From Entomortierella parvispora E1425 (lineage: Eukaryota; Fungi; Mortierellomycota): a stretch of DNA of 64,000 nucleotides. A model generated the notes under the pieces. That model was not told where the DNA came from. It saw nothing but the letters and a program-made list of their open reading frames with translations, and ran no database searches. Below, piece by piece: positions 1,021 through 33,500 of the stretch. The position numbers and the translations under genes are program-made. The DNA lies in the NCBI GenBank assembly GCA_020891255.1, contig BQFW01000010.1, positions 434,001 through 498,000 of the forward strand, written 5' to 3'. Numbering within the stretch: position 1 is the stretch's first letter; every line of letters starts with the position of its first letter.

Positions 1021-1854
1021 TCAAAGTGTTTTCTTTTGACGGCATTGATCCTGCTCCCGGTGTCCTCGGTGGCTGTACTCCATGATCCTTTGGTCGTTCC
1101 TCTTGAGCCGTTCCACTAAAGAGCCTGCAACTGCGGACCTGATCCCGACGTCGCCCCCAAACTCAGATCGGGCCATTTCGACGACTTTGATCTCCAAGAA
1201 CTCTTTAATTCCACCCTGACGAGTTCGGTATCCGTACAAAAAGGCAGAATGGTTATCCGGATTCAAGGCGTACTTTTCCAGGGCGAGATCCCGGCTGATG
1301 TAGCAGTTTTGTGTGGCGTAGGGTGTACTCTCATTGTTCGAGCTAAAGTGATGCTTGCGACATTGGAGGCATAGTTGGATCGTCCAATTTGGGTCCACAG
1401 GGAGGCCCACGCGTACCGTACCCATCTGCCGTTGACAGTGTGTCTCCACTTGAACAGGCAAGGGCAGTGAGGCCGCAGTCGTTGCTACTGTGTTTCTGTC
1501 AAAATAACTGTAGCACCGCTCACAGACCATGGAGCTGAAAGCACACATATAGAGCATGTAGGACCTTGACTCTGGCACCAGTGGCAAGAGACATAAGGTC
1601 CTCTTCGATTTGAACACTTTTCGAAAGAGATGTGACCAGTACGGCAGAGATGCGACTATATCCTGCAAGGCGGTGCTCACCATCGATATTCGCGACAGCT
1701 GGGAAGGGTATAGATAAGAACAGATCTTTTGCCACACTTCGAACGGAACGCGACGGTCCATGGTTAGCGGCGCAGTTCCTAGAGTTGGCTCCAAAGTTGT
1801 GCCCTGTTTATCCGTGCGGTAGGTAAAGTTGAATCGAGTGTGTTGACCACTCAT
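1021..1854 (-). CDS. F-box protein with C-terminal XPA/Rad14-like Zn + helical domain (family copy 1)
   Basis: 277-aa ORF; F-box VPFEVWQKICSYLYPSQLSRISMVS; VCERC...LCLQCR; YISRDLALEKYAL; KEFLEIKVVEMARSEFGGDVGI. Confidence 0.85.
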   Translation of the reverse strand: MSGQHTRFNFTYRTDKQGTTLEPTLGTAPLTMDRRVPFEVWQKICSYLYPSQLSRISMVSTALQDIVASLPYWSHLFRKVFKSKRTLCLLPLVPESRSYMLYMCAFSSMVCERCYSYFDRNTVATTAASLPLPVQVETHCQRQMGTVRVGLPVDPNWTIQLCLQCRKHHFSSNNESTPYATQNCYISRDLALEKYALNPDNHSAFLYGYRTRQGGIKEFLEIKVVEMARSEFGGDVGIRSAVAGSLVERLKRNDQRIMEYSHRGHREQDQCRQKKTL

Positions 1855-2231
1855 AAGATTCTTGCAAGTGCAAATATTATGGGAGTTCTAGGTGTGGATG
1901 AGGACGTATTGTATAGTGGGGAGCGTGGGAAGCCGCGAAAAGCAATTTGAGGATCGTTGGGAAAAGTGTTTGAACGTGTGGTGCTGCCTTTCAGGGCAAG
2001 ATTTTGTCCCAGCCCCTCGTGGGGCGAGAGGTGGTGGCTTAAGGGTGCAAAGGGCACGTGCAGGGTCCACGTCTGAACGAAGCGAGCGAGGCGCGGAGTT
2101 GGAAATTGGTGGGAATCTTGGAGATTCCGAGATTCCACTCAACATTCCATCGCGATCCTCGTCTCTTTCAGTCTTAGCCATTGCTTGACTAGGGTGAGTG
2201 GACTCTCTTTCAAGCATTCGGTTTTGGCCGT

Positions 2232-2712
2232 CATTTAGAGGCTAGGCTCGATGCGAGATTTCGATGCGAGATTTCGATGCATTCGGTTTTGCATTTTGCT
2301 TAGCCGCTACTTAGAGGCTAAGCTCGATACTTATAGGTTGAGCTCGATGCTTACCCGTTACTTAGAGGCTAAGCTCGATGCTTACTTGGAGGCTGAGCTC
2401 CATGCTTACTTGGAGGTTAAACTCCATGCTTGCCCGTTACTTACTTAGAGGCTAAGCTCGATTCGGTTTTTGCTTAGCCATTCCTTAAAAACTCAGGTGA
2501 TTGGAGGATACCGATGCATTCAGTTTTTGCATTTTGCTTACCCGTTACTTTGAGACGCTTGCCCGTTACTTTGAGACGCTTGCCCGTTACTTAGAGGCTA
2601 AGCTCGATGCGAGATTTCGATGCGTTCGATTTTGCATTTTGCTTAGCCGTTACTTAGAGGCTAAGCTCGATGCTTACCCGTTACTTAGAGGCTAAGCTCG
2701 ATGCAAGATTTC
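2232..2712. repeat. Degenerate minisatellite-like array built on TTAGAGGCTAAGCTCGATGC, CCCGTTAC and GAGATTTCGATGC modules
   Basis: About ten copies of the core (T/C)TTAGAGGCTAAGCTCGAT or close variants, interleaved with other short modules; translates as repeated YLEAKLDA in short + ORFs. Confidence 0.85.
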
Positions 2713-3393
2713 GAAATCAATCAATTTCTCCATTCAATCAATTTCAAGGTTCACGCGTTAAGTGCCCCGGGCGAGGAAAGATTCCTCGACTTGATCATTC
2801 TCCTCCCCATGATCCTCGTGTCGTCTTTGCACCGGATCCTTTTCCCACCTTTTCTCCACTCCATCCATCTTCGCCATCTTTGCCAACCGTTTATTCCGTC
2901 TTCACCTTCGCTCCTACTCTCACTCAATCCCCCTCTCCCTCCACTCCTCTTCTTTTAAACCCCTGGTTCCAGTTCATCCAGAACCTTGACCATTCCCCTG
3001 ACCCGTTAGCTCATTGTATTGTCAGGGAGGCCCGTGCACGCTCATGAAATTGTCACTTCACAACTTGTTGCTTGACATTAGTTAGACAAGAGGTTCTCGA
3101 ACCTCCCTGTGCAGATAAAGAGCTCAGACTCAGCTAATGATGGGGCTAGAGTTGTCGCCCCTCCCATTCTCGTCAACTTTGACTTGCGCAAAGGAATGAA
3201 GAGGATTCAAGAGAAAATGCGGATAAAAACCTCCGATAAGTCCCTTATCCCTTAACTTGAATAATTTTTTAATTTTTTAAACCGGAAAAACACGTGATAT
3301 TCGAATGCGCGTTTACATGGGACATCGACTTCTCTCGTGCTTTTCCGTTAATTAGACGTCTCATTTTCTCTTTCTCGAACATCGTCCTTCACC

Positions 3394-8324: not shown

Positions 8325-9146
8325 TCACCGATGGCTGTAATCCATGATCCTGCGGTTACTCCTCTCAAACCGTTCTTCTAAAGATCCAGCGACCATGGCC
8401 CTGATCCCGACGTCTCCTCCATATTCGGATCGAGCAATCTTGATAACATCGCTTTCCAAGTACTCGCCTGTTCCACGACTGCCGTATCGAATTATGGCGT
8501 CGGAGGAAAAATAGTCCAGATTCAGGGCGTATTTTTTTAGGACAAGATCCCCGGTGATGTAGTTGGTTTGTGCAGCGTACGGGATTCTCTCTTTGAGATG
8601 AGTGAAATGATTCTTGCGGCAGGGAAAGTACATTTGAATGGTCCAGTTCGGATCCACAGGGTAGCCCACGAGTTGAATACCCTCGTGCTTTCGACGGTAC
8701 GCTTCTACTCGAGTAGGCAAGGGCAGTGAAGCTGCATTCCCTGCCTCGAGGTTGCTATCAAAATACTCGTAGCACCTCTCACACACCATGGAGCTGAAGG
8801 CACACATATAGAGCATGTAGGACCTTGACTCTGGCACCCGTGGCAAGAGGCACAAGGCCACTTTTGACCCGAATAGTTTGCGAAACAGAAACGACCAGTA
8901 AGGCAGCAAGTCGACTACATCATGGAGGGTGGTGCTGACCATGGACATTCGCGAAACTTGGGAAGGGTATAGATAGGAACAGATCTGCTGCCACACTTCG
9001 AACGGAACGCCACGGTCCATGGTTACTGATCCTGTTGCGGCGGATTCCAAACCCCCGCCCTGCTCCTCCATGCGACGAACGAGATCGGATCGTGTATGTT
9101 GGCCACTTGCAAGCTCCTTCGAGATGTTAATTCGATTCGGATTCAT
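8325..9146 (-). CDS. F-box protein with XPA-like C-terminal domain (copy 2); one Zn-ligand Cys replaced by Tyr
   Basis: 273-aa ORF paralogous to 1021-1854; VCERC retained but LCLQCR reads MYFPCR; ARSEYGGDVGI. Confidence 0.85.
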   Translation of the reverse strand: MNPNRINISKELASGQHTRSDLVRRMEEQGGGLESAATGSVTMDRGVPFEVWQQICSYLYPSQVSRMSMVSTTLHDVVDLLPYWSFLFRKLFGSKVALCLLPRVPESRSYMLYMCAFSSMVCERCYEYFDSNLEAGNAASLPLPTRVEAYRRKHEGIQLVGYPVDPNWTIQMYFPCRKNHFTHLKERIPYAAQTNYITGDLVLKKYALNLDYFSSDAIIRYGSRGTGEYLESDVIKIARSEYGGDVGIRAMVAGSLEERFERSNRRIMDYSHR

Positions 9147-15224: not shown

Positions 15225-18200
15225 ATGCCATGGAGCCGACGGAGCAGTCGGTCCCATGAAGCCGCTACCGAGGCAGAGATACTTGAGGCCATGAGTCGGG
15301 TCAATACTCAATTACCACCACCACCACCACAAGAAAAGGATGAATACGATACGGTGGATCTCAGCGACGCGGCATTTCAGTCACCTCATAGCACATCGCT
15401 GGACTATTCTCATGGACGGGAAGAGATTGCAGGAGGCAATAGCGAGAGGCTCTTTTCCACACGTTCGTCGCAGCAAGGTCTACCAATGTACACACAACGT
15501 CGGTGCAGCGGGCACAGGTCGCAGCAGGAGTCGGTTCATTCTATGCAACAATTTTACCATCATCATTATCGCCAGGACAGCCATCCTCTTCGGTATCATT
15601 CATATGACCCCTACAGCGACCCCCAGAATATGCAGGAGAATATTCACCCACTCCAATTACATACACAAGCGCATGAAAATGATGATGAAACGAGAGAGGA
15701 GGGGGAGAGGCCAAGGCTTGGAAACGGTTTGGAAAACCACGGTTCATACACTGCTGAGAATCCCCAGGAAGGTGGTACAGCGGCTTTTGAGTCAATAGCG
15801 ACAGGAGCGACGACTTCCATGACAACAACATTAACAACCTCAGCAATGGCATTCACTACAGCACCACGGCCGCTGTCGCCAGTATCTCCATCAACGCCAA
15901 TGCCAACGGCACAACGGACACCGATCATTAACAAAACGCTGGCAAGACTCACCCATCAGTCACATAGTTGCAAGAGCTCTTCTTCCTCCCACTCTTGTGT
16001 TTCCTCTTCTTCGCACTTCTCCTCCGCCTCTTTTGCTTCCACAGTCATACAAGGATCAAGGATGCAGCAACACTATCCCTCACTGCCGTCGATACCAGGT
16101 TCCGCTCCTGGCTCTCCTTTCTCATCCTCAACAGTCACGGCTCAAACTTCGCCGTCGTCAGCTTCAACTCTGCATCACGTTGGCGACAGTCCTTCTCCCG
16201 CTTTGGCTTTAAAGATGAAGGCCTTTGAGGGTCTTCCGGACTGGAGTCCGTCCTCCAGCGGTCCGCCCCTGCCCATCCACGACCATCCTCATCAACAAAC
16301 CGAAATAACCGTTCATGAGAGCGAAATGTCACTTCATCCACTAGACAGACTTCCTTCTGAGGTTGACTTGTCTGAAAGATCTAATTCGTCGTTGACTCTT
16401 GTAGCGGCACTATCCGATCTGGAGGTTGGACGGTGCGCTGTAGAGGAAGGAGTAGACGAGCCTTGTATTACTTGCCATATTGTTGATTGGCAGACCATCA
16501 AAGCCGGGGTAAGAAGCGGAGAATCTGATTCCAAGTTGCAAAAGAAAAAAAAAAGGTTCTTACTCATCCAAACGTACGCCTTTTTTTTTTCATCAAATGT
16601 AGCTACTGCCAACCTCCAGCCACGGTCGAGACGCTCTCTTGGCTGCTGTTCTCGTAGCTTTGGTGACCATTGCACTCGAAGCGATCCTAATCCATCGCCA
16701 TCAGACCATGACAGCGCTAGCCACAGGCACTTCCTCGTCGTCGTCTTCAGTGGTGGATCCTGCAGTCCTAGCGGCTGGTGGCCCCTTTGAGATCTCGTTT
16801 TTCCGACCGTTGACTGTATACTACTATCTCTTTATTTTGGCCGAGATCTTTGCAGTGGGATTGCTCTGGGACGCAGCCATCCACAAGAACTCCCTGCAGG
16901 TAGTCGCGTTCACTGTGTTTGAGTGGTGTATGGTCTCTTATTCAGGACTACAGATCTGGCAACACGATCAATTGGTCAAGGACATTGGAATCCCTCCAGA
17001 GTTGTTGGTTCGATTAGGGGATTCGACCACGCGACTGTTCCTGTTCACACAACTGGGAGTTCAGGTGGTGGCCTGTATTGGTATCACCCTTGTCACTTGG
17101 AGATTGTACTCGGAGTTTGGATGGCTCGTCTTTCAAAAACTTGGTGCCGATGTGACCTTGAGGAGTAGGTGCTCGCCCTGAATGAATGTGTCGTACAAAA
17201 AAAAAATCAATGCCTGGCCTCTTTCGTCTGTAACTGACTCAAGTAACCTCTAGAAATGATGAAGGAGTATCGACTCTTGTTCACCTTGTTGAAACTGGAC
17301 GCATTCTTCTTTCTTGGGTACGCGATCCAAATCGTTACTTTGACCGACAAGCATTGGCAAAAAGGGCTTTTGGAGGTTGCAGTCGCCATCCCTCTCAGTG
17401 GAGTCATCATCCTCCTAGGTTTTTACGCTGTAAGTTCTTTGAACTGGCCTATCGTTCAATGTATGGAGTCTTCCGCCTATAGAGTGATTCTGACGTATCT
17501 TGAAAATTTTCCACAGCTCCGACACGAGAACAAGGTGACGATGGGTGGGTTCATAAGCTGCCTAGGACTCCTGATCGCCTACATGGTCTACCGAATCTAT
17601 GCTCTCTATCAAACTGTGACAGGCGAACCTGCAACAGATCCATATTTCTTCAGTCGGAAGACAATGACAGTCTTTGGTAAGTTTGAGTAGCCATCAGCGG
17701 TTTGGAGACTCATCCACTGTGGCTGCTCAACGTGAGGACTCACAGAGATTATTCTTTTCTTCATTTTTTTTCTGGGTAGCATCATTAACTCTGATAATGA
17801 CAGCTATGGCTTTGATCAACGCCATTGTCATGGTCTGTAACTTCAACAAGGGTCTCAAGGAAGCCAGTATGTCCCATTCCCCTCTCTCTCCTTCGCTCCT
17901 TCATCCCACCCCTGTTTCGATGGTAATGCCCAAACAAAGGTTCAGCTACTCACACCCTCTGGATTCTATTTACTACAAATTGTGTTTCATAGTGCAACAG
18001 TACCATTTACGCCGCTCCAGCACCATCCGATCTGTTACCACTGTCTCGCTACATCACCATCATGGACAAACTGGACGCGACAACAATCTGACGTCCCCAG
18101 AACGCCTTCAGAATCCGACTAGGAACGGACACGACTCACATCAGCAGCCACCGCAGCCAGGAAGCGGGAAAGGTCCTACCAGTGGTCAAGGCCGAAAGTG

Positions 18201-18384
18201 CGGTTATGGAGGCGTGAAGATTGTTCGATCTGGGACTGTTCAAGGATTTGGCCATCAACCTACGGGAAGTTGCGGATCTGGTGCCGGAGGGAGGAGTCCC
18301 AGGAGATCGTCCAGACGGAGCTTGCTTCACTGCGAGTCGACCACTCCAGCACCAGTCATGGTGGAGAGATGGCAGATCGAGTAG
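15225..18384 (+). CDS. Multi-pass membrane protein of the UPF0658-like family with a long S/T/H/Q-rich N-terminal extension, multi-exon
   Basis: Hydrophobic exons with [15 protein letters not shown] and [36 protein letters not shown]; introns near 16.45-16.6 kb, 17166-17253, 17430-17515, 17678-~17780 and ~17868-~17990. Exact first junction uncertain. Confidence 0.7.
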
Positions 18385-18579
18385 ACGAAAATCCAGGGCC
18401 GATGGAAGGACAGAGACGAGATGGCACTTGTAAATAGCTAGTTTGTGCCTGTCTTTTTTTTTCCTTGATTAATGACGAATCAAAACACAAAAAGGCCCGT
18501 GCCTCTGGTCAAAATCTCGTACGATGCCCCCTTTATTTTCAAACATCTCTTCTCCTTTCCTCTATCACCCTCAGCAAAC

Positions 18580-19353
18580 ATGACAATTGAAAAAAATCCC
18601 ACGCCTCAAGGCACCTCCAGCAAGAAGGTCATAAAAACGGCTTCCCTGACCCAACATGAACGGAATGTCTTAATGCCACAACGACGCATGCCAGTGGAAG
18701 TATGGCAACGTATCTGCGACTATCTCTATCCATCGCAACTCATCCGCCTCAGTAAAGTCTCTCCCCTGATCCATGAAGCTGTCTGCACCCTTCCTGTCTG
18801 GCCTAAGTTGTTTGCGTTGACACACGGTGAGAACTCTCGACTGCACCTGCTTCCGAGGATACCAGATTCTCAGAGCTACATGTACTACATGTGCGCCATC
18901 AGTCCCAAAGTCTGCGAACAGTGCTTCAAGAGCTGCGATTTCGAAACCGACCGACCCTCTGCTTTTCCCTTGCCCACTATTGCCCCCTCTCAGACGCGCT
19001 GTACAAAGGATATCACGTACCACGGTGAGCCCGTAGACAAAAGTTTCACTGTCCGCCTATGCTTGGAGTGTCGCCGATCCTTTTTCGAGATCAAGCCAGA
19101 GCCGATTCCTAAGGGCATGAATACGAAGATGGATAACTTTTCCAGTATCCTTGCAAGGTATCCTCGTATCCAAGAGGTACCTTCTATTCGAGATGCGGGC
19201 CATCAGCAGAATAGCAGCTATTATGAACTTGTCTTCTTCAAGGCCGCCAGGGTGCTTCACGGAGGGGACGTTGGAATAGCTGCTGCCACCCAGACTACAG
19301 ACGCCCAGAAATCTATGGTGGACCGCAGACTCGAGCAATATGCGTCCTCATGA
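18580..19353 (+). CDS. F-box protein with XPA-like C-terminal domain (copy 3)
   Basis: MPVEVWQRICDYLYPSQL; VCEQC...LCLECR; AARVLHGGDVGI. Confidence 0.85.
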   Translation: MTIEKNPTPQGTSSKKVIKTASLTQHERNVLMPQRRMPVEVWQRICDYLYPSQLIRLSKVSPLIHEAVCTLPVWPKLFALTHGENSRLHLLPRIPDSQSYMYYMCAISPKVCEQCFKSCDFETDRPSAFPLPTIAPSQTRCTKDITYHGEPVDKSFTVRLCLECRRSFFEIKPEPIPKGMNTKMDNFSSILARYPRIQEVPSIRDAGHQQNSSYYELVFFKAARVLHGGDVGIAAATQTTDAQKSMVDRRLEQYASS

Positions 19354-19815
19354 TTATTTCTGAATACAGAGAATCACAGAAGAACTGCTGCACTGGCCTC
19401 AAGCATCTTTTTTTCTTTCTTTTTTTTTTTTTATGGGTGAGGGAAGGTTCTGAAAGACTGTTGACTTTGAGCACATGATATTGCCTGAAAAGACGTTCGC
19501 CATTGGCCGTTGGAGATGGAGAAGTGTTAAAGTATTGACGTCCCTTAAGATGCCAGCAACGCTCCTGAAAATATTACTATGAAAGAATTGTTTGGGAGAG
19601 GATACAGGAACCATCCAACGGTGCAAGGTGAGGCGTGTGCGTCTGAAGTGGGGAGAAAGAAAGGGAGAGAAGTTGACAGCGAGCAAAGAAACAATTAAAA
19701 CAAATGCGAGTTGGCTGAGACGGGAAGAAACAAAAACGGCCTGTGCACCTTTTAATTTTCGGTGAAGGCGGGTCTGCTGTTTTCAAGCATCTTCTTCTTC
19801 TCTCTACACTCCACC

Positions 19816-20577
19816 ATGACAGATCTGGACGCTCCCATCGTTGAGCCTGTCAAAACCGAGCCACTCGTCCAAAATGAACCCACCATCATAAGGTCAAAAC
19901 CAGGCGTCCCTCTTGAAGTCTGGCAGCGCATCTGTGACTACCTGTACCCCTCGCAGCTCATCCGCCTCAGCAAAGTCTCATCATTGACCCAACACGCTGT
20001 TTGCAATCTCCCTGTCTGGTCCAAAGTGTTTGCCTTGACACATGGAGAAAAGTCCAGACTGCACCTGCTTCCGAAACTACCAGATTCCCAGAGCTACATG
20101 TACTACATGTGCGCCATCAGTCCCAAAGTCTGCGAACAATGTTTCAAAAACTGTGATTTCGAAACCGACCGACCCTCTGCTTTTCCCTTACCCACCATTG
20201 CCCCCTCTCAGACTCGCTGTACAAAGGACATCACCTACCACGGTGAGCCCGTAGACAAAACATTTACAGTCCATCTCTGTTTGGAGTGCCGTCGGGAATT
20301 TTTCGATATCAAGCCAGAACCGATCCCCAAGGATATTGTCAAAAAAATGGACTCCTACTCCAATATCATCGCGAGGTACCCTGATATCCTTGAGGTACCT
20401 TCGATCCGCGATGGGGTCTATTCCAACTCTATGAACTACAGCGAGGTGATCTTCCTCACAGCCGCCAGAGTGCTTCATGGAGGGGATGTTGGCATCATTG
20501 CCTCTCGGCAGACAACAGAAATCCAGCAAGCAGTAACCAGTCGCAGGCTACAGCAGTATGTGTCTTCCGGCAATTGA
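19816..20577 (+). CDS. F-box protein with XPA-like C-terminal domain (copy 4, tandem duplicate of copy 3)
   Basis: VPLEVWQRICDYLYPSQL; central segment nearly identical in protein to copy 3; AARVLHGGDVGI. Confidence 0.85.
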   Translation: MTDLDAPIVEPVKTEPLVQNEPTIIRSKPGVPLEVWQRICDYLYPSQLIRLSKVSSLTQHAVCNLPVWSKVFALTHGEKSRLHLLPKLPDSQSYMYYMCAISPKVCEQCFKNCDFETDRPSAFPLPTIAPSQTRCTKDITYHGEPVDKTFTVHLCLECRREFFDIKPEPIPKDIVKKMDSYSNIIARYPDILEVPSIRDGVYSNSMNYSEVIFLTAARVLHGGDVGIIASRQTTEIQQAVTSRRLQQYVSSGN

Positions 20578-20709
20578 ACCTGACAAGCTAGGACTAAAAA
20601 CTTGAAGCTATCGCACGTTTGCCTCATGGCCAGTGAAGTGTTTACAACCAGGCGCCAGACCGCATCAATATATTGCTCAAACCCTTCGCGTCGACTGTCA
20701 CTAGAATTG

Positions 20710-21205
20710 CTATTTTATCCATTGTTTATTGTAATGGTCAGAGGATATAGCTAGAGATCTTCTGTTTTGTGAAAGCCGCACTTTGGGGTCCGGTAATGGC
20801 TTATTGAAATCTACAGTCTTTGGATCAAACACGACGTCTGACTTTGCGTTATCCCCCTTGTCACGAATAAACAAGGGCCCGAGGATTTTCTGAGAGCCGA
20901 CATGCCCCTGACAGGCAGCTTTCCGATGCCACTCCCTGGCGATGGAAAAATCCTGCTTACAACCCTCACCCTTCCTGTACTTTTGACCCAGGTTGAACTG
21001 CGCTCTTTCATATCCTTGCTCAGCAGCTTTCGTGTACCATTCCACAGCTTTGTAATGGTCCTGTGCGATTCCCTTACCGAGGTCGTACATGAGACCCACG
21101 TTGAACTGCGCCTTCCTAAACCCTTTGTTGGCGGCCAAGAGTTGCCACTCCATTGCTTTAGAATAGTCCTGAGCAAGTCCATTGCCATCCCTGTACATGA
21201 CACCG
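20710..21205 (-). pseudogene. Detached 3' end of the SEL1-repeat gene, downstream of the MULE insertion
   Basis: Three SEL1 repeats (GVMYRDGNGLAQDYSKAMEW...AQFNVGLMYDLGKG...AQFNLGQKYRKGEG) plus tail; continues the frame of the 5' part once the element and one TSD are removed. Confidence 0.9.
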
Positions 21206-21214
21206 ATATTAAAC
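21206..21214. repeat. Left target-site duplication ATATTAAAC
   Basis: Identical 9-mer directly abuts both element ends (21206-21214 and 30567-30575). Confidence 0.95.
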
Positions 21215-21297
21215 GGGTCACACGATTTTACTGTTGATTTCTGTATAGAGTTATGAACCTTACGTCTGAGAATGAACGTTGCGTCTGAAAATAGAAT
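21215..21297 (+). repeat. Left terminal inverted repeat of the MULE
   Basis: GGGTCACACGATTTTACTGTTGATTTCTGTATAGAG...GTCTGAAAATAGAAT matches the reverse complement of 30484-30566 at 76/83 positions with no gaps. Confidence 0.95.
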
Positions 21298-22834
21298 TGA
21301 CCATTGCTCAAAAAAAAAAAAACTCTGAAAATAGAATCAACCTCTTTGTCTGCTGGATTGGTCTGTGCTGTGGTTTCCCAAGAGGCACTGGCAGCCACTC
21401 GTTGTCAGTGTTCTACTCAAGAAAGAAAAAAACTTACTGTCCTTCGAATGGTCATGGACGTCAAACTGACGTTCTGTTGCTCCTCTTGTCTCTACAAAAT
21501 GGGGCCTGTGCTCGAGCTCACTGAAATGGCACCTTGAATCCCGATCGACTTCTGCCCCCGCCAATCCCTGCCATTCTGACCATTACTACTTCAGCCACAC
21601 TGTTGTCTGCTCACCCATAGGTTCATTTCATCGCCAGGCCAGATCGTAGTTACACCGCTTCCCATCCAGTTCTATTAGGTTCATCATCCACGCTCATACC
21701 CACTACAGGATCTCGTCTACCTTGTAGTATAAACCCCCTTGCCCTTCCTCAGCCTGTAGCTCTCACATACCACATTAATCCTCGTAGTGATTATATGACC
21801 CTTTCCCTTCCACCATCTCTCCTCTGCGTATCCGACTGTGACAGTGAGGCTGATACATGCAGAACCTGTACCTCTTCATCATGCCACTCGATCACATCAA
21901 CCCGTTATTGCGATTACAGGATGCCAACCAAACAACCCACTGCAGGCCACAATAGAAAAATAGAAGAGAGAATGAGATGAAAAGGAGGGGAGAATCATTG
22001 GCAACAGCGAGAAGACTTCGATGCTACGGCTATTTGCGCAATGTGACGGGTTGCAAGCAGCAGCCAGTGTATCCTCGAAATAGAGGCGCCATGAGGGCTA
22101 GAAACCAGATCTACAGTAAGCCTACGGAAGGAGGCTCGCCAAAATCACTGGGGAGCCGACTGCTGCCCTCATTCATTGTGTAGTGTCTTTGGGAAGTTTG
22201 TGCGAGAGTAAAAGCGCGAATATCAGGATATCAGGATACCATGACAAAAAAAAAAAACATTGCCATGCATAGTCTTCCTCCTCTGCCGCTTGACTCCTTC
22301 CTCGATTCCAGACCTACTGGCGCCATAACCCAGGGCGTATACCACAGGCACAACCCCTGCACGGCGTGGGACTATATCTTCCTCCGCCTGTCTTTGGCTA
22401 ACTAAGGTCAACTGTTGTCGCCCCCCTTTCGGTCCTGATCGAGAATCGACACATCAGTATTGCCTGGGGAAGACTTTTTTGACAGTAAAACAAAAAAATC
22501 TATCGTCCTTCCTGTCTTTCCGTTGCAGAATGCTACACCAGTGGCATCTGCCCTGGGCAGACTCGTTAGTCTGCAAAAAAAAAAAAAAAAGATATAGGCC
22601 AATCTGTGCGTTGATCCTAGGATCTCGTGGAAAAAAATGTGCTGCTGCATCCACAAGAGCAAAACCAACTTTGGACACAAATGAATAATTTCTTATTATG
22701 AATTATACCACCAATCACGTGCACACACTACACATCACACGTGACATATAGTGGCTTATCCTCTATTGTTTCATCACAAGCTTCGCCCAAATTGCCATTC
22801 CATCCTCAATTCCCCGTCCACATCACATTAATTC

Positions 22835-23844
22835 ATGAAGAATTCCAGCACTCACCTCCAGGATTACAGGGATCTCTTTAACTTTTTCAGGGACCCTCCC
22901 AATGCAGCCGATCTAGTTGAAGGAAAAAGAGGTACATAGCTGGTTCTTTTATTTGTCCGAGTTGTATGAGAAACTAGACACCTTCTTAACATGAGGTTGT
23001 TATGTTGTGGCAGGGGTCTTTCTATGGCAAGGGGATAACGTAGGGAAAGTCAATCCCAAGCACAGTTCCCCAAGATTCCGTCTTCTGCGACCGAAATGTA
23101 ACGGCCAGAACCAGGCATACATTCTGGTCGCTGTAGTGTTCCTTGTCAGGAGATTCCGGGAACTTTTGGACAACCTACCCGGGAAAGATAAAAAAGAATT
23201 ATTCCGGCCTTCTCGAGATGGGTACCTGTTCAGAGATTGGGCCCACGACCTAGGGCATCAAGAGCCAGTTTTTCAGGGAGTGACAGGACAAGCTTATTGG
23301 TCCATGTACGACCTACTTTTGAAGAAGTATGCCGATTACCAATATATCAGCAGGAACATCGGGAGGGAATACGCGTTCGAGCCAACTATCCTCTTCAATT
23401 GGGTCAAGGAGCTTTCTGAGCTGAGTGCAACCTATTTCCGTCGTGCTTTTCCGACGTACAAACGCAGTGGCGAAATGTACAGAGCAGGGGGAAATGAACA
23501 GCAAGAGGATAGAGCGGAAGACGAAGAGAAAAAACGCTCAATCACGGTCACGGTCACGGTCACTATCACGGTCAAGGTCAAGGTCAAGGTCACGGTCAGT
23601 AGAATATGGTGCCATATCAACCACCCTCGCGGATAGGTCGGCCAAACGGATAAAGCTAGATCTCGTCTCTCAGCAATCTGGTAGTTCACGGCCGGCCTTA
23701 GCGGGGTTGGGAAGCGAAACGGATAGAAGTCAACTTCGTTTAGATAGTCTGTCGCCATACATCGGAGAGCAACTTACAGCCATGTCTGACGCGATATACG
23801 ACCTTTCCCAGAAGGTTATCCAGTTATCACAGCTTTTGCAGTAA
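22835..23844 (+). CDS. Accessory gene inside the MULE, unknown function; C-terminal RS-dipeptide tract and predicted coiled coil
   Basis: Exon 1 22835-22931 (MKNSSTHLQDYRDLFNFFRDPPNAADLVEGKR), GT-AG intron 22932-23013, exon 2 in frame with ORF 23007-23636. An apparent frameshift at the A6 run 23529-23534 leads into RSRSRSLSRSRSRSRSRS...LSQKVIQLSQLLQ. Confidence 0.6.
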
Positions 23845-24422
23845 GTGCTTCAACGTACAACCTAGAGAGTACTCTAGAGAGATATGACTCATGCCCATGC
23901 CGTCCTGTGATTTGCCTACTAACTGGCATTTCTTCCCATGCCAGCACGGAAGTTCAAACGAGGCCCCCTTTACGGCACGTGCCAATGGCTCCCGTTCGTT
24001 TGCAACCCTGTGAAAAATCCTAATGAGCGATTTCTAGACTGGACGCGGTGAGCACAGGTGGGGTCCCGGAACTGCTCCTTTTGGTATCCTTTCAGTCTAC
24101 AGTCATGCCATTGGTCATTGGGTTGGTTCCCGGATGGACGGAGTAACGCGAAATAAAGCCCCGCCTTTCAGCTACTACTGTACTGTACGTATACACTTTA
24201 GTGCTGCTCACTTTCTGGCCTTTGATTTGTTCTCAAGTGATGCTCACATCAAACAGTACCGGAATTAAGCTCCGGCCGGACGACTGCTGCTGCCTCGCCG
24301 CCAGGAAGAACTGCCCAAATTGAAGAAGGCGCCAACTTGCTGATATCTTTTTTCTTCTCTCATTTCTTCATCACCCTTCAACTCTACCCTCATTAGCTCA
24401 TTCCAATACACCTTCCTTCACA

Positions 24423-27400
24423 ATGAGCAGAAACCCCCTCTACTCCATCGAAGATATGGATCTCGCGTTGCGAGTCGCTTCAATGGTGAAGGACGCCAAA
24501 ATCAATCCCGATAAACTTAGAGAACTTCTCCCTCTAATCAACCGTATTGCTGATCAAGGTGGGGATCGAGAGAGCAAGAGGGCACCCTCCCCATCGCCTC
24601 TGGGAAGAAGCCCCCAGAAGCCTCGAACCGCGAAGAGGGCGAGACGCCTTCTCGCCCTTCCTCCGTCAATTTCTACTTCAGAAGAAGAGTTCCTGAGCTG
24701 GGCAAATCCAAATCGCCGTCTCTCCACCCCTTCTTCCTCTTCTTCTTCGGAGGGTTTTCCCGAGTTTGCGTCGAAAGAAGAGTAAGTAAACATCAGCTGA
24801 ACTTTTGAAGCCATTCCTCCTTGTGGCAGTCTACTGAGATTCTTCCTATTCAAAACGTAGAACGCGCGTCAAGCATCAAGATGTCATCACCATCGAGAGC
24901 GACGATGAGTCTCCGTATGTTTCTACTTGTCTTGTTACTGATTTGTACGATCATCATATTAACGTCTAGCCTGTCTTTTTTTTTTTTTTTTTTTTTTTTT
25001 TGCGTAAACGGTTAATAGTGACTCTAAGGTCTGTCGCGAAAAGGACGGTTCGCGACTAAGGTACCAACTAGTGACCGACCTTTGTTCTTTTCATATCAAG
25101 CTCAACTTTCGATATCAAACTGACCATCTGTTTCACCCACTTGTCTATTATTTGCCATTTTCAACGAAGCTACCGCGAAGCAGCCGCTTTTCGTAAGACT
25201 GACGCTGTTACCCTCCTCGCAGACAGAGAAATTTCAAACACGAGCACTAAACTTACCTTGACGACAACCAGATCTGGGCATGGGTATGTTCAGTTCTAAA
25301 ATCTCGAAATGAACGCTTTCCTTGCTAATTTACTCATTATTTCGCCTTTGATCCCGCTTTTCTTTTCTGTCTAGACTTGTGGCAAAGTTTTCGAAAAGGC
25401 TCTCCCCCTCCCCAGTTGCTGCACCTGCTACACTTGCCAAGACCGGAGCTTGTGTGTCTGCCCCGTCAATTGCGCGGTCTATTTCCCCCAGTTGCCAGGT
25501 CTGTTTCCCCCAGTTGCCAGGTCTGTTTCCCCGTTTAGCACACCTTCAGCGCTCGATAAGACCGTAAATACCGCGCCTGTGGTGCCCACCCCCCGATTGC
25601 TGCGCCTGTGGTGCCTACCCCCCCAATTGCCGCACCTGTGGTGCCCACCCCCCTGATTGCCGCGCCTGTGGCGCCTGCCCTCCCAGTCGTCGCATCTGTC
25701 AAACCTGCTACTTGCACCAAGTTCGCAATTGACACGGCATCCACTCCTGCGGCCAAACCTATGACCTTACATCCTAATGGATTAAGAAGATCATATTCTG
25801 GGTAAGGGCTTTCATCCCATAAGCACTGTCATCCTTCCTTCATATATCTGAAAGCTGACGTATTCTACTGTGTATAGCCCGCTTCCTGTTTCTCGTCCTG
25901 TTTCTGGCCCTTTTATTGGTCCGATTGCCAAGCTTCCTGTTGCTGGTCCACTTGATGGTCGTCGATTTGCTGGTCATCCATTTGCTGGTCCATATGTTGG
26001 ACACCCTGATGCTGGTCCATATGCAGGTCTTGCAGGCCCATTTGCTGGTCATCTTGCTGGCGTCTCTTTTGCTGGTCATCCAGTTGCTGATCCGTTTGTC
26101 TGTTATTACCCCGGCTCTCGTCATGAAGTGAGAAAACCCTGCTCCAGGTATGATGATCAGAAGTTCAATTGACTTTGGTGTGTTCCTTTTTTCTTTCGAT
26201 CTAATCTCTCTTTCTTTTATAGCTCAAATAACCCTATCGTTATTCCAGATGACCTGTAAGTTTTTTTTTTTTTTTTTTTTTTGAACGTCGACGACAGTTC
26301 CTTGATCCCAAGCCATGGTGAGGATCGATTGCTAGTGGTCCTAACCGCCATACTCCTATGTTTTATATGCTAGACCTACAATTTCTGTCAGGTATTCGTT
26401 CAAAGATACCCCCGGCGCTTCCTTCCTCGCTAAAAGTGATGGGGTCGGTGCTGAGGACTCACCAAGCGTGGCGCCTGCTCCTACTACAAGAGATACTTCC
26501 GGTACTTCTCATACTTCTGATACTCCTGATGATGTATTTGCGAATGTGGTTAAGTCTCCCTCAACTGGGTATGTTCGCCACTTGATGACGTTTTATGTTG
26601 ATCCCTGTCGTCTTTTTTCTGTGTCGTTCTCGTACGTTCCCTGGTATTTATTCAGATTCTTGTCTTTTTTTAGGCTGCATGTCGGTGCTACGCCTGCTGA
26701 CGAGCAGAAACTAAAGTCCTCGAGAGAGGCAGCTTCCTCAGAAAATAGCAGAGGGTATGGATACTACTGCATCTCATCTCGTTCCTCTCGGGGCTATAGT
26801 CTGTCTGCTAACTTTTTTTTTTTAAAAAAACGAATTGTAGAAGCCTCGAGTCAAGCGACGAGTTCCCAAATGGAAACATCAAGTTTAAGCGCAATGTCCA
26901 GGACTATGACACCATTTTACTCGCTCGGAGTGTAGGCTGGGCGACTCAAGTTTACCGGCGCAATATCAAATCTGATGGGTCAATGATCAAAATCCACAAA
27001 AAGTGCCTTGGTATTCTGCGATGCCCAGCTCCTGACTGTCGGTGGGTGCGGCGACCAAAAGTTAATGGACCTGTTGATTACGTCACAGGCGAAACGCGTA
27101 TCGACATGTCGGACACACCCGAGAGCCAATTTTGCGCTATCCACGAGAGAGCTTGAACATCTGCCATGTACAGCTGTCCTGGATTTGGTCGAGGAAGGGG
27201 GATGCATCAAGTTCACCCATCGCGGTTACCATACACATCAGGCACCAATCCCGAAGCGCGCGTCGCAGGATGCGTTGAATTACCTGGAGACGATTGTTTC
27301 TACGGCTCCTGAAAGCAGACCCAAGCACCTTCTCCACAAGACGGAGTTGCGAGACCCCATCAGCCGGAAGTATATGGTATATCGCAATCTCAGCTATGTG

Positions 27401-30141
27401 AGACACCTCCGGAACAAGATCATACACAAGAATCGAAGCGCCAACGACCTTGGTTCGCTAGCGGCTTTGGAGGAAGTGGTCGGGTCCTGCTTCGTAGTGT
27501 CCTCAAGTATTTCATCGTTTGATGGACACATATCAATTGTCATTGACTTTATCCGAGAGCACGCTCAGACACTGGATTCTTCGTTGTCGACGGATTCGAT
27601 TCATGATATTGTAACGGACGACCACTACGCCGATATCTGCGTTACGGTCACCTCGGCCTTCAGTGATTTTTGTTGACCGGACAGTACCGATAACAATGAC
27701 GATCCACCTTGGCAAGACCTCCGAACACTACAAGAAGCATTTCCTGGCCGTATTCGACGTCCTTAATTATCGAGACTGGGACGACTTCGACGAAAACTTT
27801 CCTGGGATGACCTGTGACTTTGCAGATGCAGAGCGAATTGGATTCAAAGACGCTGTTCTTGAGCGTTTTGACATCGCTCCTGAAGACTTCGTTCTCGAGC
27901 GATACTTTGGCTACTGCATTGTCCATTACGAGCGATCGGTAGTCCGGATTCGCAAAAATGGCGCCATTATTCCACCGGGAAAGGAGATGGACTTCTACGT
28001 TGACGCCATGATGCTTGCATCCAGCTCTGTGACCCGCTTCGAGTTCGATAATATGGTAGCCGGATTATTAGAGAGGTTTCCCAAGATCCGCCGTTGGCTT
28101 GACTTCTACCTTCATCAAGATCGTTCCAAGATTATTTTCCCTGCACTTCGGGATGTTGCAGCGAAGGAAACAATCAGTAAAGACACCAACGCCCAGGAGA
28201 GTCTGGGAGGAGACTTCAAGTTATTCGTCAAGCGTACGCACCCAACTTGCTCGATCATCCAGGGGGTCTCAGCGATCGTCAGATACCAGGAGAGCTTCAT
28301 GGAGGACTTCGAATTCGTGTGTCAGGGTGGTGTTCTTCGCTACAAGGACAGCAGGAAGGAAAATCCTACACAGAGGTCTCGATCATCCAGAGAAGGTGCA
28401 AAAAATCGAAGGAAGACTGCTGGGATGAAGTTGCGGGCACAGCACGACAGCTTCGTGCCAAGAAAGCCACTGGTAAATGTCAAGTACACCAATGACGGTC
28501 GAGCACCGGACACCACCAAGGCCCTTCTTGACGAAGAAACCAACACCAAAGCAAAGGGTGCCAAAAGAAAGCGTGTCATCGAACCCAGGGACACAGGAAG
28601 GGACACCGAAGGCAGAGGTGCAGGACGGCCAAGAGGAAGTCGTAATGTATTGCCCTCCATCAGATCTGTCGGAGATATCGACTGGGATACCTTTGGGATC
28701 CCATGGAGGAGACAAGAGCCTGTTGCGAATCGATTCACATTCGAGAACAGTTGCCCTGTCGACACAACTTTGATGGCCTGGTTCCTGCTATCAAAATATT
28801 CTGGGGCGACTCTCCCATCAGCCGTCGCAAGATCAAATGCGGGTCAAACGTTGTTACGAGTTATGGAGGAGATCCGGGCCACACGGTACGACTACGCGCG
28901 AGAGCTGTGGTGCACTGAGGCGATGGAGCTAGCTGGAGATCAGCACCATGACCTCTTCAAGAGTTTGGAGGAGGTATTTCTTGATATTCTACCTGGTTTG
29001 ACGCGTTTCGAGACAGTAAGAACGACGGAGTGCACCCGATTGGAATGTCCACAGCGGATCGAAATGTTCACCCCAAGAGCAGTTGTGATGTCGGCCTGCG
29101 CGAGGATTACCCAGAGTTCTTTTGACCAATCATGGACTCGTCAGACTGAGTTTACTTGTTCAACCAAGGTCGACATATCATCTGGGGGTGATTCCGAGAT
29201 GATCGGAGAGGACACAAGAGTGGAGTCGCTGATCAATGTCGATGGAGGGCTTGAGTTTTGGCACGCCTGCGCAGGAGAGAGAAAATCAACAGGGCCGATA
29301 ACTTTGACAACCCATCCCTATATGTTGGTTCTCGACTTCCTTCAATCCGCTTATGAAGTCAATGGAGAAGCAGGACCATGTATACCTCCGGCGTTTCTGA
29401 CCATGAACCTCAAGGATTACAAGCGAGCAGCCATAATGTACAGTAACGGGACGCACTTCTGTTGCACGGTCTTTGCTGGTACGGTTGCATTTGTGTATGA
29501 TGGAGCGAGAAGAGGAAGACTCATCCGCAATGTACCAATCAAGTCGGTCACTCATCCCCCCTGGCTACCGAATCATTCATGTTTGGTATATTATTGAGCG
29601 CCCAGACCCGGAGGAGGACTTGTCGCTGATCGCAAAAGATGTCGTTTCGATGGGCTCAAGCAATGGCAGCCCAACTGCAGATGCCGAATCACATAGCACC
29701 AGTACTGTTGACAGGAGTGATACCAATCCGTGCAAGGAGTCTGCCAAGCCTCAGAAGGGCTCTCCGTCTGTCAGTGCTAATGGCAAGGCCAAGAGTACTG
29801 CCAGTAGCGAAACCAAGGTGATTGGCACTCGCCGAAGCCAAAGAGGAGAGGTCACTTTGCCACCCTTTCAAGACACTCTCAAGACCCGCCGTAGTAAGAA
29901 GACCTACTACCCTGCTGGTCTTAGTGTTTGTTCTGTCAGCAAGAAAGGGAAGCGGCCTGTTTGCGGTGCTTGCAAGGAAGAGCTCGAGCGCGATAGTCGC
30001 AGGTTTGTTTTTACAACTATCTCGGGGGATGATATTAAGAGAGTAGACAATGTCTCTTACCACTTCAACCACAGCTGCATGGCAGCGCTTCCTGTGGGCC
30101 ATCATGCCGAGGCTCAGGATGCGCTAGATAGTGAACTTTGA
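24423..30141 (+). CDS. MULE transposase: intron-rich low-complexity N-terminus, GCM-type Zn domain, DDE core, USP-like protease domain, PARP-type Zn finger; several apparent frameshifts
   Basis: GCM-like 26858-27245 (EFPNG...VGWATQVYRR...KKCLGILRCPAPDC...RP...CAIH..ELEHLPC...FTHRGYHTHQAP); DDE core ~27590-28205; ENSCPVDTTL ~28750, GTHF ~29455, YDG ~29500; CGAC...YHFNHSC 29960-30080. Frame breaks at ~27150, 27667-27671 and ~29591. The 5' exon structure is only partly resolved. Confidence 0.8.
25573..25690 (+). repeat. 30-bp coding tandem repeat (APVVPTPPIA, ~3.5 copies) in the transposase N-terminal region
   Basis: Units start at 25573, 25602, 25632 and 25662; the first unit is one C short in a C-run. 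Confidence 0.85.
25920..26090 (+). repeat. Coding repeat of GCTGGTCCA/GCTGGTCAT modules (FAGHP/AGPY peptides)
   Basis: Translation VAGPLDGRRFAGHPFAGPYVGHPDAGPYAGLAGPFAGHLAGVSFAGHPVADP. Confidence 0.75.
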
Positions 30142-30428
30142 GCAAAGGAGAGAAGGAAAGAAAGAAGAGAAAGAAGAGAATAAAGCTGGTGATTTTTTGA
30201 ACGTCTTTTTGTCTTTTCTGTGAGGCGAGTTTTATTGAGCAAAGTGCGTAAAGTGAAGTTCGAGCCCAACTGTTTACAGCTTGAACAAGTCCAGTCGACT
30301 ATCAAGATGGCTACAAAGCTATATCCCTCTGTCTGTTTTTTCGGTGTCAACAGGCAGCACACACAGGCCAGCTGCTAGTCCTTCGTCGCTGGATTGAGCC
30401 AGGGTTTGGAAGTGGTCTGTGAGTAACG

Positions 30429-30511
30429 CTGGCATCCCACCCATTCTATTTTCGGCAAACGTTCATTCTCTGGCATCCCACCCATTCTATTTTCAGACAC
30501 AACGTTCATTC
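30429..30511. repeat. Subterminal ~41-bp direct repeat, two copies, overlapping the right TIR
   Basis: CTGGCATCCCACCCATTCTATTTTC starts at 30429 and 30470, each followed by ..AACGTTCATTCTC. Confidence 0.85.
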
Positions 30512-30566
30512 TCAGACGTAAGGTTCATAACTCTATACAGGAATCAACAGTAAAATCTATACACCC
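30484..30566 (-). repeat. Right terminal inverted repeat of the MULE
   Basis: Reverse complement reads GGGTGTATAGATTTTACTGTTGATTCCTGTATAGAG...GTCTGAAAATAGAAT. Confidence 0.95.
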
Positions 30567-30575
30567 ATATTAAAC
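30567..30575. repeat. Right target-site duplication ATATTAAAC
   Basis: Identical to 21206-21214. Confidence 0.95.
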
Positions 30576-33500
30576 TGAGCCTCTGCATCGCCCTGGATGG
30601 AGGCCTTTCGGTACCAACTCATTGCTTTGAAGAAGTCCTGGTCAACCTCTTCGCCACGCTCATAGATTTTGCCCAGCTCACGTTGTGCATCGGCCTTTCC
30701 TTGCGTGGCCGCGTCCAAAATTTTTGCCAAGGACTTGCGAGAATTGGCGACCGCTAGAACGGTCCCGTCTCGCTTTCGTAGAGCCTCTAACCAGCGGCGG
30801 GCTTGTTCATTCCCTCGTTCTGAGGCCTTCCAATACCACTCGGCGGCTTTAGAGGCATCCCGCGGAACATTTTCGCCAAGATCATACATGACGCCTAGTC
30901 GAAGTTGGGCTCGATCGTTTCCTTGATTGGCAGACATCAAGTACCACTCCAAAGATTTCGAGTGGTTCTTTTCAACGCCTCTTCCTTGGCCGTACATAAA
31001 TCCCAGGTAGCGCTGAGCATCACTGTTTCCTTGGCTGGCAGCCGACTTTAAAAGCCACTCCACAGCCTTTGTGTGGTCCTCAGGGGCACCTTGGCCTTGA
31101 TCATACATGATGCCCAAGTAGTACTGCGATTCCTTATCTCCTTGTTCTGCGGCCTTCGAATACCACCTCATTGCCTCGGAGTAATCCTGTTGAACGCCCT
31201 CGCCATAGTAATACAAGCCGCCGAGATAGTACTGTGCTTCGGCGTAACCTTTCTCAGCCGCTTTTAAAAACCAGGTTCTGGCTTTGGAAAGATTGGCTGG
31301 GACGCCATCGCCATAGTAGTACATAAGACCCAAGTGCTGTTGGCTTTCCGTGCTTCCTCGGTTGGCAGCCCTTTTAAACCAATGCATTGCCTGGGCGAAA
31401 TCCTGAGGTACTCCAAGGCCCCAGTAGAGCAATTGGCCAACAAAGCACTGTGCTTCCGCGTTTCCTTGGCTGGCCGATTTGAGATAGCAAGACATTGCTT
31501 CCTTGTAGCTTTGTCGAACTCCATCTCCGGTCCGGTACAGGTGCCCCAGGCTCAGTTGCGCCTGCGGAAGTCCTTGTTCGGCCGCCTTCATAATCCACTC
31601 CTGAGATTTATATCCATCCTGTGGAACACCATGACCATTCTCGTACATCAGGCCCAGGAAGTACATAATGTGCTTTTCGGAAGCATCTCTTTCCCCGATG
31701 ACAACGTTTGCGTTGGGGCTTTCTAGGGGAACAGGTTTCTCACTCTTGCCCGAAAGTCCTGCATTGCTTTGGGTGCGAGCTAGTCCTCTCTCGGGATAAT
31801 ACGTTCGCCAGTCCCGTTTCTGATCACTGTCCGGTGGGAGAGAATATCCCTGTCCGTGCAATTCCAGCAGATATTCCCGAGAGTTGGTGTCCCCTTGATT
31901 AGCGGCTTTCAGATACCATTCCATGGCTTTGGAGCAGTCCTTAGCAACACCTTTGCCATCTCTGTGCATATGGCCAAGGTACCGCTGGGCATGGTCGTAT
32001 CCTTGTTTGGCGGCGCTCAAGAACCAATCCAGTGCCTCCTCATAGTCCCGCGGAAACCTATCGCCCATGTAGTAGAGCATGCCCACAAAATACTGGGTAT
32101 GAGCGTTTCCCTGTTTAGCCGACCTTGTATACCACTCTAGGGCTTTAGGGAGGTCCTGCGTAACACCTTGGCCCAGACTATAGAGGTGACCCAGACTGAA
32201 TTGGGCTCTCGCGTCCCCCTGGTTGGCGGCTTTCAGATACCACTCCACGGCCTCGGAGTCATCGCCATAAATATTCTCGTACAAGTGGCCCATGTTGTGC
32301 TGGGAGTGGGCGTCTCCTTGGTTGGCGGCCTTCAAGTACCACTTCATGGCGTTAGAATAGCTCTTCTCCTTCTCGTACATAAGGCCAAGACTGAACTGGG
32401 AAAATACCTCCCTTTGAGATGCGGCCTTCATGAACCACTCCCTAGCCCTGACAGAGTTTTGTGGTACGCCTTTTCCAAGATGATACATCCTCCCAAGGTT
32501 GCTCTGGGCGTCCTCGTGTCCTTGGTCGGCGGCCTTGATGTACCACTCCACAGCTTTTGTGAGATCCTGTGGTACACTCCTGCCTTCCTCGCACAAGCGC
32601 CCCATGTAATATTGAGAGTGTGCCTCTCCATCGTTGGCGTCCTCCAGGTACCAAGCTACAGCTTCCTGAAAATCCCCTGGAAATCCGGTTCCATGCTTGT
32701 ACATCATACCGAGGAAATGTTCGGCGTGAGCATTTCCTTGGTTGGCGGCCCTCAGGTACAAGTCTGTGGCGATCGACAACGCCTGCTCTGTTCCTGTGGT
32801 GAGGGGAAGGCCAAAAATGAATTCATCAAGTTTCCATGTGGCGATTTGCTGATGTTCTCCTAGAGGTACGACAGCGTGCGGATCTTTGCCGATTATAGTC
32901 GTATGGGGGTCTCTGGTAGTCCAAGTAGTATGAGGCTTTCTGGCCAATATGGTTGAGTGTGGTTCTCTGGCAGGCAATATCGTCTGAGACTCGTTGATAA
33001 TTAGCCTCGCGTGAGGGTCTCCTGCGGGCAGCAGAGTGGAATGAGGACCTGTGGGCAACGCTGAAGGTTCTGTACGAAAATCTGCTGGGAGCACAACCGT
33101 ATCGATACTCCCTGTGGATGCCGTGTCGATTCGAAGCGTTTGGACGGTGGTGCTGAGACGATTGGAGCTTGTTTGACTTTTGCTCTGATTGTCGGGCGGG
33201 CTGATGACTCCGTGATCTGGTGGAGCAATAACCGCAGGGGCTGGGAAAGACGGGTCCACAGGTGCTTGACAGACACTGATCGTCAAAACGACATCCAAGA
33301 TTGCGCCTGGGCAGTGCCTGATGCAGTGTGGAACTATTCTAAGAAAGCGAGAAACGCCGTACTCAGTTAGCATTGTTTCTCCTCATGCGTAGAACCAGTC
33401 CTATGAGCTATTGAGTTCTCAGGCAACCACATTACCTGCTTCGATTCGCGTCCCGAAGCAGCTTAGCTACACGAGTGCCATTGCGGACATGTCTGACTCC

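Follow-up and report, generated by a model that had tools for sequence, protein, structure and literature searches.

The closest described relatives of the element reported here are the MuDRF transposons, a branch of the Mutator-like elements (MULEs) that the available text of Cantu et al. 2011 defines by a GCM domain, a DDE transposase and a 9-bp target-site duplication (TSD), and places in Pucciniales, other Basidiomycota and Naegleria (Puccinia, Melampsora, Laccaria, Schizophyllum, Coprinopsis, Naegleria) (PMC3164196). We analysed a 64-kb genomic window from Entomortierella parvispora E1425 (assembly GCA_020891255.1, contig BQFW01000010.1, approximately positions 434001-498000; coordinates below are positions in this window unless another sequence is named), in which a 9,352-bp element lies between two parts of a Sel1-repeat coding sequence. 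We put at about 0.88 the probability that this arrangement reflects a real and very recent cut-and-paste insertion of a MuDRF-type MULE into the Sel1-repeat coding sequence. MuDRF elements (Repbase MuDRF-1_PSt and others) correspond to the class that RepeatMasker and Dfam call MULE-F.

The ends of the element are sharply defined (Table 1). On the plus strand at the left junction, ACACCG is followed by ATATTAAAC (21206 onward) and then by GGGTCACACGATTTTACTG; at the right end, the reverse complement reads CAGTTTAATAT and then GGGTGTATAGATTTTACTG. The two copies of ATATTAAAC form a perfect 9-bp direct repeat that directly abuts the tips of the terminal inverted repeats (TIRs), both of which start with GGGT. 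In an ungapped comparison over 83 nt, the TIRs are identical at 76/83 positions, with mismatches at all of positions 5-9 (CACAC versus GTATA) and at two others, in agreement with a preliminary description of the locus that had reported these TIRs and this TSD; in a repeat search, the inner 74 nt were 97% complementary. A 36-nt core of the TIR occurs just twice in the window, in the two TIRs themselves (shuffles expect 0), and had zero matches in an exact scan of a metagenome collection. All four genomic copies of the element show this same left–right difference at positions 5-9, and a similar asymmetry (5′ GGGTGACCCGATTTT, 3′ GGGATGTATAGATTTT) recurs in a relative, L004, whose transposase is 29% identical. 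Because it is shared in this way, we regard the asymmetry as a feature of the ends and rejected decay as its source. A subterminal motif, GAAAATAGAAT, has four matches in the window, all of which lie in the element ends (0.11 expected from shuffles), two per end, in inverted arrangement and at a spacing of 40-41 bp; these motifs are candidate transposase-binding sites.

The flanking coding sequence is read on the minus strand. From its ATG at 33373, the 5′ part runs to 30567 (2,807 nt, phase 2), and the 3′ part continues from 21205 to a stop at 20710 (496 nt, phase 1); Pfam PF08238 matches both (E 3.6e-149 and 1e-24). Conceptual excision of the element with one TSD copy kept gives an open frame of 1,100 codons with no internal stop, and the junction, EAQFNIGVMYRDGNG, completes a Sel1 repeat. 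The two halves are thus stop-free and in frame with each other, as had been proposed. The total of 3468 nt or 1155 aa given with that proposal depends on a putative upstream exon of 200 nt; the deposited annotation, which gives the 5′ part 1,000 aa and likewise places an exon upstream, implies about 221 nt instead, and the phase does not change between the two. The truncated 5′ protein ends AQFNMGV, and its stop is indeed supplied by a TAG within the right TIR. The host sequence just outside the TSD (21196-21205, minus strand CGGTGTCATG) is alike to the right TIR tip GGGTGTATAG (30557-30566) at 7/10 positions, so that the truncated protein closes with MGV in place of the IGVM of an intact protein. 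This likeness may reflect chance or a target preference.

The window transposase open reading frame (ORF) is identical to EMPS_07363 of E. parvispora, and through the 90% protein cluster to which EMPS_07363 belongs we located three further copies, each full-length and on another contig (Table 1). Three of the four genomic copies (the window copy, L007 and L008) are bounded by perfect 9-bp TSDs, each different. The different flanks and individual TSDs indicate transposition rather than segmental duplication, and the near-zero substitution divergence indicates that it was very recent, which upholds the young age claimed in the preliminary description. All three TSDs start with ATA and are AT-rich. 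The L007 and L008 insertions are intergenic; among the four copies, only that in the window interrupts a coding sequence. The fourth copy, L006 (6963-16171 of BQFW01000011.1, flanks CTAAAATAA / GTTATCAAA), lacks the 172 bp found at window positions 26393-26564, and is both the sole copy with an uninterrupted transposase ORF and the sole one without a TSD. L006 may represent an older member of the subfamily, or may have arisen through recombination between copies.

Profile and fold searches place the transposase among MULEs. A profile of the catalytic core retrieved 1,568 cluster representatives at E <= 1e-3, and the family is therefore large. Its alignments contain an invariant DFxDAxxxGF...A, then C..H, then TNAQES; the second aspartate, C, H, N and E are invariant in 50 diverse members, and the first aspartate is invariant in a 12-sequence core alignment. 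The AlphaFold model of residues 490-1015 of P0020, the transposase model of L006, has a mean pLDDT of 90.8. Its Swiss-Prot fold matches include the Kluyveromyces lactis mating-type protein alpha3, FRS4/5/6/10/11, FAR1, FHY3, Drosophila NOF-FB, ZSWIM9 and IS256-family transposases; the core matches the IS256-family ISCth4 in the PDB, where Hermes (hAT) appears only at E ~0.02; and in the ESM Atlas the matched clusters carry PF10551 in 60-98% of their members (TM 0.60-0.66 by query). The N-terminus matches GCMa and GCMb (Swiss-Prot models) and 1ODH (PDB) by fold, the family profile matches mouse GCM1 (1ODH) at the E value listed in Table 1, and Pfam GCM is found in 14/50 members. With the 9-bp TSD, the long GGGT TIRs and the D...D...CxxH...TNAQES core, these matches to MULE-derived and IS256 proteins bear out the superfamily that had been assigned from the outset. 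The accompanying suggestion of a possibly undescribed family did not survive, since GCM, DDE and a 9-bp TSD together are the definition of MuDRF in the available text of PMC3164196; by that published description, the element would belong to an already described branch. Transposase homologues are present in Puccinia graminis and Melampsora larici-populina (E 6e-15 to 4e-10), which are both listed MuDRF hosts.

Beyond its core, the transposase gene is predicted to be a long, spliced one. At its start, near 26851, the conserved GCM region has no ATG and follows a stop and a pyrimidine tract, as it does in the relative L005; because this start lies ahead of any ATG, an upstream coding exon is needed. 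ORF1, which probably provides the first coding exon (Table 1), and the transposase form one protein in model P0020 (1,582 aa). The segment between ORF1 and the GCM domain is a disordered linker encoded by proline-rich 30-nt and 12-15-nt tandem repeats (25460-26100). Downstream of the DDE core, a USP-type peptidase region matches USP46/USP12 by profile (E 1.5e-11) and USP18, USP7, USP14 and USP1 by fold (422 PDB matches at E <= 1e-3), and a Cys (NxC), a His (HF/HY) and an Asp (YDG) in it are conserved, rust-fungus members included. The Cys/His module that ends the protein is confidently folded in the prediction; UniRef calls one fragment of it 'PARP-type', and its profile matches to PARP1 are weak (E ~0.9). 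Accessory C-terminal modules vary in the wider family, in that the distant members P0124, P0115 and P0149 bear Ulp1/C48 (E 5e-17) or PHD domains, instead of or in addition to these.

Table 1. Features of the element and its host gene (window coordinates), and the copies on other contigs.
Feature	Position	Strand	Basis or remarks
Left TSD copy, ATATTAAAC, 9 bp	21206..21214		Sequence at left junction
Right TSD copy, ATATTAAAC, 9 bp	30567..30575		Sequence at right junction
Left (5′) TIR, start GGGTCACACG	21215..21297	+	Repeat search and ungapped comparison; terminus identical in 4/4 genomic copies
Right (3′) TIR, start GGGTGTATAG; contains TAG 30559-30557	30484..30566	-	Repeat search and ungapped comparison
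GAAAATAGAAT x2, left subterminal	21287..21337 (21287-21297, 21327-21337)	+	Motif count in window
GAAAATAGAAT x2, right subterminal	30443..30494	-	Motif count in window
Sel1-repeat host gene, 5′ part	30567..33373	-	ORF and Pfam; deposited model extends to 33656 with intron
Sel1-repeat host gene, 3′ part	20710..21205	-	ORF and Pfam; deposited annotation calls no gene here
Gene 1, orphan, 239 aa (P0287, deposited model)	22835..23636	+	Called in or near the same place in 4/4 copies
ORF1 (MSRNPLYSIEDM...), probable first coding exon of transposase gene	24423..24785	+	Conserved upstream of transposase in L005 and L002
GCM-type (WRKY-GCM1 fold) zinc DNA-binding domain	26851..27241	+	Profile versus 1ODH, E 4.3e-14; fold match
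DDE catalytic core, predicted: D1 27593-27595, D2 27816-27818, CxxH 27915-27926, E 28197-28199 (TNAQES)	27584..28202	+	Alignments and fold
USP-type (C19) cysteine peptidase domain: Cys 28752-28754, His 29454-29456, Asp 29499-29501	28743..29600	+	Profile and fold
C-terminal Cys/His zinc-finger-like module and transposase stop	29956..30141	+	Predicted fold, alignments
Frameshift 1	27144..27145	+	GAGAGAG: (GA)3 in window copy and L008, in-frame (GA)4 in L006 and L007
Frameshift 2	27663..27667	+	T5 in window copy, L007 and L008, in-frame T4 in L006
Frameshift 3	29551..29556	+	C6 in window copy, L007 and L008, in-frame C5 in L006
Copy L007	BQFW01000007		9,353 bp; versus window copy 0 substitutions, 9 gap openings; TSD ATAAACTGT
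Copy L008	BQFW01000013		9,354 bp; versus window copy 1 substitution, 7 gap openings; TSD ATAAAAAAC
Copy L006	BQFW01000011		9,209 bp; 98.6-99.4% identical, 49 mismatches, 172-bp deletion; no TSD

Several results weigh against a recent MuDRF-type insertion as we read it. No contiguous Sel1 orthologue was present among 3,331 matches, the best of which were 38-44% identical in a search swamped by repeat matches, and the reconstructed empty site had zero matches in an exact scan of the metagenome collection. PF10551 had zero matches in any family member scanned with Pfam (the transposase, ten relatives and 50 members), and PF00872 matched weakly in 2/50 members (best E 0.027); in the transposase and the ten relatives, the catalytic region drew no Pfam match of any kind. 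Finally, a tblastn search with the relative P0002 spans four frames of the window, the transposase frame being broken three times. If the junctions between element and host were an assembly chimera, the Sel1 gene would not truly be interrupted; we find this scarcely credible, as a misjoin would not create a perfect 9-bp duplication exactly at the TIR tips whose removal restores an in-frame Sel1 repeat, the same structure stands with different TSDs at two other loci, and 97% of sampled 31-mers of 29300-31300, across the right junction, are present in a DNA run of the same organism, possibly of the source sample. The unmatched PF10551, together with a CxxH motif that Yuan and Wessler reportedly noted in 2011 in several DNA-transposon superfamilies, could instead be taken to place the element in another or a new superfamily (hAT, KDZ, P, Merlin and so on). 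That placement is highly improbable, given that MULE-derived proteins and IS256 transposases top the fold searches and Hermes does not, and that the Pfam models for KDZ transposase, Plavaka and hAT never reach E 0.01; at E up to 5, the sole KDZ-associated match is CxC3, in 1/50 members (E 0.033). The 9-bp TSD, moreover, recurs in relatives (9 bp, ATTTTTTTC, in L003; 8 or 9 bp in L002 from Podila; none seen in L004), and MULE transposases typically bind DNA through domains of the WRKY-GCM1 fold (PMC1702500). We therefore attribute the missing PF10551 and PF00872 matches to a limit of the Pfam models; the MuDRF authors, according to the available text, needed four PSI-BLAST iterations (PMC3164196).

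As assembled, the window copy cannot encode a full transposase. The relatives P0002 (1,062 aa), P0003 (1,070 aa) and P0010 (1,014 aa) have single uninterrupted ORFs, and L006 is in frame at all three sites listed as frameshifts in Table 1, with one 1,052-codon ORF; L007 and L008 carry further private homopolymer frameshifts. The assembly was made from GridION Nanopore reads with SMARTdenovo and polished with Nanopolish and Pilon, and was annotated with RNA-seq-guided AUGUSTUS (PMC8759367). Between them, the three young copies show 14 indels in simple repeats versus 1 substitution, a ratio that points to Nanopore errors left behind in repeats beyond the reach of short-read polishing. For the two lesions common to all three young copies, real lesions of a non-autonomous progenitor explain the data equally well, so that the three frameshifts leave either a non-autonomous copy mobilised in trans by an intact one, for example that on BQFW01000011, or a copy that is itself intact but obscured by Nanopore indels that escaped polishing. 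We give an even chance to the former, in which the window copy is defective, the extra T (27667) and extra C (29556) are real and inherited from the progenitor of the young copies, and the movement was driven by an intact transposase such as that of the L006 type. T5 and C6 are shared by all three near-identical copies and missing from L006, the other homopolymer differences are scattered over the copies one or two at a time, and L006 retains its long ORF as P0002, P0003 and P0010 retain theirs. Both lesions are also base gains, whereas Nanopore homopolymer consensus errors are more often missing bases. However, the excess of indels makes homopolymer lengths untrustworthy, and Pilon can probably not correct sequence whose short reads map to several identical copies. 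That the window copy is intact and autonomous, with all three frameshifts being leftover homopolymer or dinucleotide errors in a multi-copy repeat, falls short of an even chance but is a serious contender. In keeping with an assembly based on Nanopore reads, each of the three lesions falls in a simple repeat (GAGAGAG, T5 or C6), 7-9 indels separate substitution-identical copies, the (GA)n site varies inside the young trio, and L006, the sole copy diverged enough for unique read mapping, is the sole copy in frame. Yet an identical error would be needed at two sites in all three copies, and the neighbouring 2.8-kb host ORF has no frameshift, though it is single-copy and hence polishable. The element had earlier been called probably active: near-identical copies at different sites and one intact ORF speak for this at the level of the family, and the three frameshifts speak against it for the window copy as assembled. 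The stronger claim, that the young copies are intact and the element is a currently active, autonomous MuDRF, we consider doubtful.

In addition to the transposase gene, the element contains gene 1, and the count of two genes given before thus holds. Gene 1 has zero Pfam matches, its sole database match is itself, no homologue was found outside the element copies, and a feature search of the ESM Atlas gave sub-threshold matches only. An A-run indel at 23529 varies between copies; the 3′ end of the gene is uncertain, because this single-A difference switches the frame. Two overlapping frames (23425-23844 and 23007-23636) cross a (TCACGG/TCAAGG)n repeat, the deposited one encoding TVTVTV/KVKV and the other an RS-dipeptide tract. 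Capture of host sequence in the manner of a Pack-MULE was rejected, as the internal 5.6 kb is unlike the rest of the window and gene 1 has no homologue outside the element. The element also contains long A/T runs of 16-27 nt (22575-22590, 24975-25001, 26258-26282), and length differences between copies lie mostly in such homopolymer and tandem runs.

The relatives with recognisable ends are 3.9-4.7 kb long (L002 and L003; L004 is ~4.2 kb), have TIRs of roughly 85-105 nt that start with G(G/A)GT, and all lack gene 1. In the Podila sequence L002, the long inverted repeats at 364-490 and 15496-15615 were considered as family ends and rejected; the true ends are at 8331 and 12274. Downstream of this Podila verticillata element, an unrelated perfect inverted duplication of 2,922 nt with a 134-nt spacer occupies 16192-22169. 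In L004, a metagenome contig, the MuDRF-like relative has a hAT-type element (1293-3127; Pfam DUF659 and Dimer_Tnp_hAT) just upstream of it.

These features suggest how the insertion may have arisen. The GCM domain would recognise the paired GAAAATAGAAT motifs near the ends; the DDE core would excise the element and insert it at a target whose strands are cut 9 bp apart, probably with a preference for AT-rich sites; and the insertion in the window would truncate the Sel1 protein at the stop in the TIR. As insertion biology this is ordinary: the Sel1-repeat family is very large, and the insertion knocks out one member of it. The locus nonetheless records that Mutator-type elements transposed very recently in a genome of the Mortierellaceae, with three copies that differ by 0-1 substitutions over 9.35 kb and one of them in coding sequence. 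With it the MuDRF branch reaches into Mortierellomycotina, and its transposase draws attention to an extension with a USP peptidase and a zinc finger that is conserved among such transposases. Transposon censuses that rely on Pfam and recognise MULEs by PF10551 and PF00872, such as PMC5751038, would overlook this large family. Were the element intact and active, it would probably be the first DNA transposon of Mortierellomycotina with demonstrable mobility, and it might be developed into a tool for insertional mutagenesis in oleaginous Mortierellaceae. Its transposition would then depend on a USP-type deubiquitinase built into the transposase and on a PARP-like zinc finger that senses DNA breaks; no such accessory chemistry is known to have been described for a cut-and-paste transposase.

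Among known systems, the IS256 family includes ISCth4 (PDB 6XGX), the best solved-structure match to the catalytic core, and shares with the element the TNxxES-type glutamate motif. IS256 transposases, however, are prokaryotic proteins of ~400 aa that lack GCM and USP domains, generate TSDs of 8-9 bp and are only ~12% identical to the present one. Canonical MULEs (maize MuDR, Jittery, Hop, Mutyl and Aedes Muta1, with the derivatives FAR1/FHY3 and K. lactis alpha3) share with the element TSDs of 8-11 bp, long TIRs, a D-D-CxxH-E core on an RNase H-like fold, an N-terminal DNA-binding domain of the WRKY-GCM1 fold and, in many cases, a second ORF without a known function (mudrB, MutB). They differ from it in that the element has no PF10551 match and no SWIM zinc finger detected after the core, and in that its DNA-binding domain is GCM proper rather than of the FAR1 or MuDR type. 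The plant KI-MULEs (Kaonashi) likewise pair a Mutator-type element with a ubiquitin-like-specific cysteine peptidase, and the distant member P0124 has a Pfam Ulp1 domain. Their peptidase, however, is of the Ulp1/C48 type, whereas that of the present element, in which a Pfam scan found no PF02902 match to indicate a C48 domain, is USP/C19-type and fused within the transposase chain.

The closest correspondence is with MuDRF. Both have an N-terminal GCM domain fused to a distant MuDR-type DDE transposase and a 9-bp TSD, and in both the likeness to canonical MULEs shows only in iterated or fold-level searches. Set against the available text of PMC3164196, in which the protein comprises GCM and DDE and the host list does not include Mortierellomycotina, the present element differs in its host and in the USP-type peptidase and C-terminal zinc finger that its transposase also carries. 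Homologues from Pucciniales and from Mortierellaceae both align across the USP/zinc-finger region, and the extension may simply have gone unreported in MuDRF so far, as judged from that text. The element also contains an orphan gene and ~5 kb that its 3.9-4.7-kb relatives lack. What looks new here is thus the host lineage, the USP-type protease domain and C-terminal zinc finger on the transposase, and the orphan second gene.

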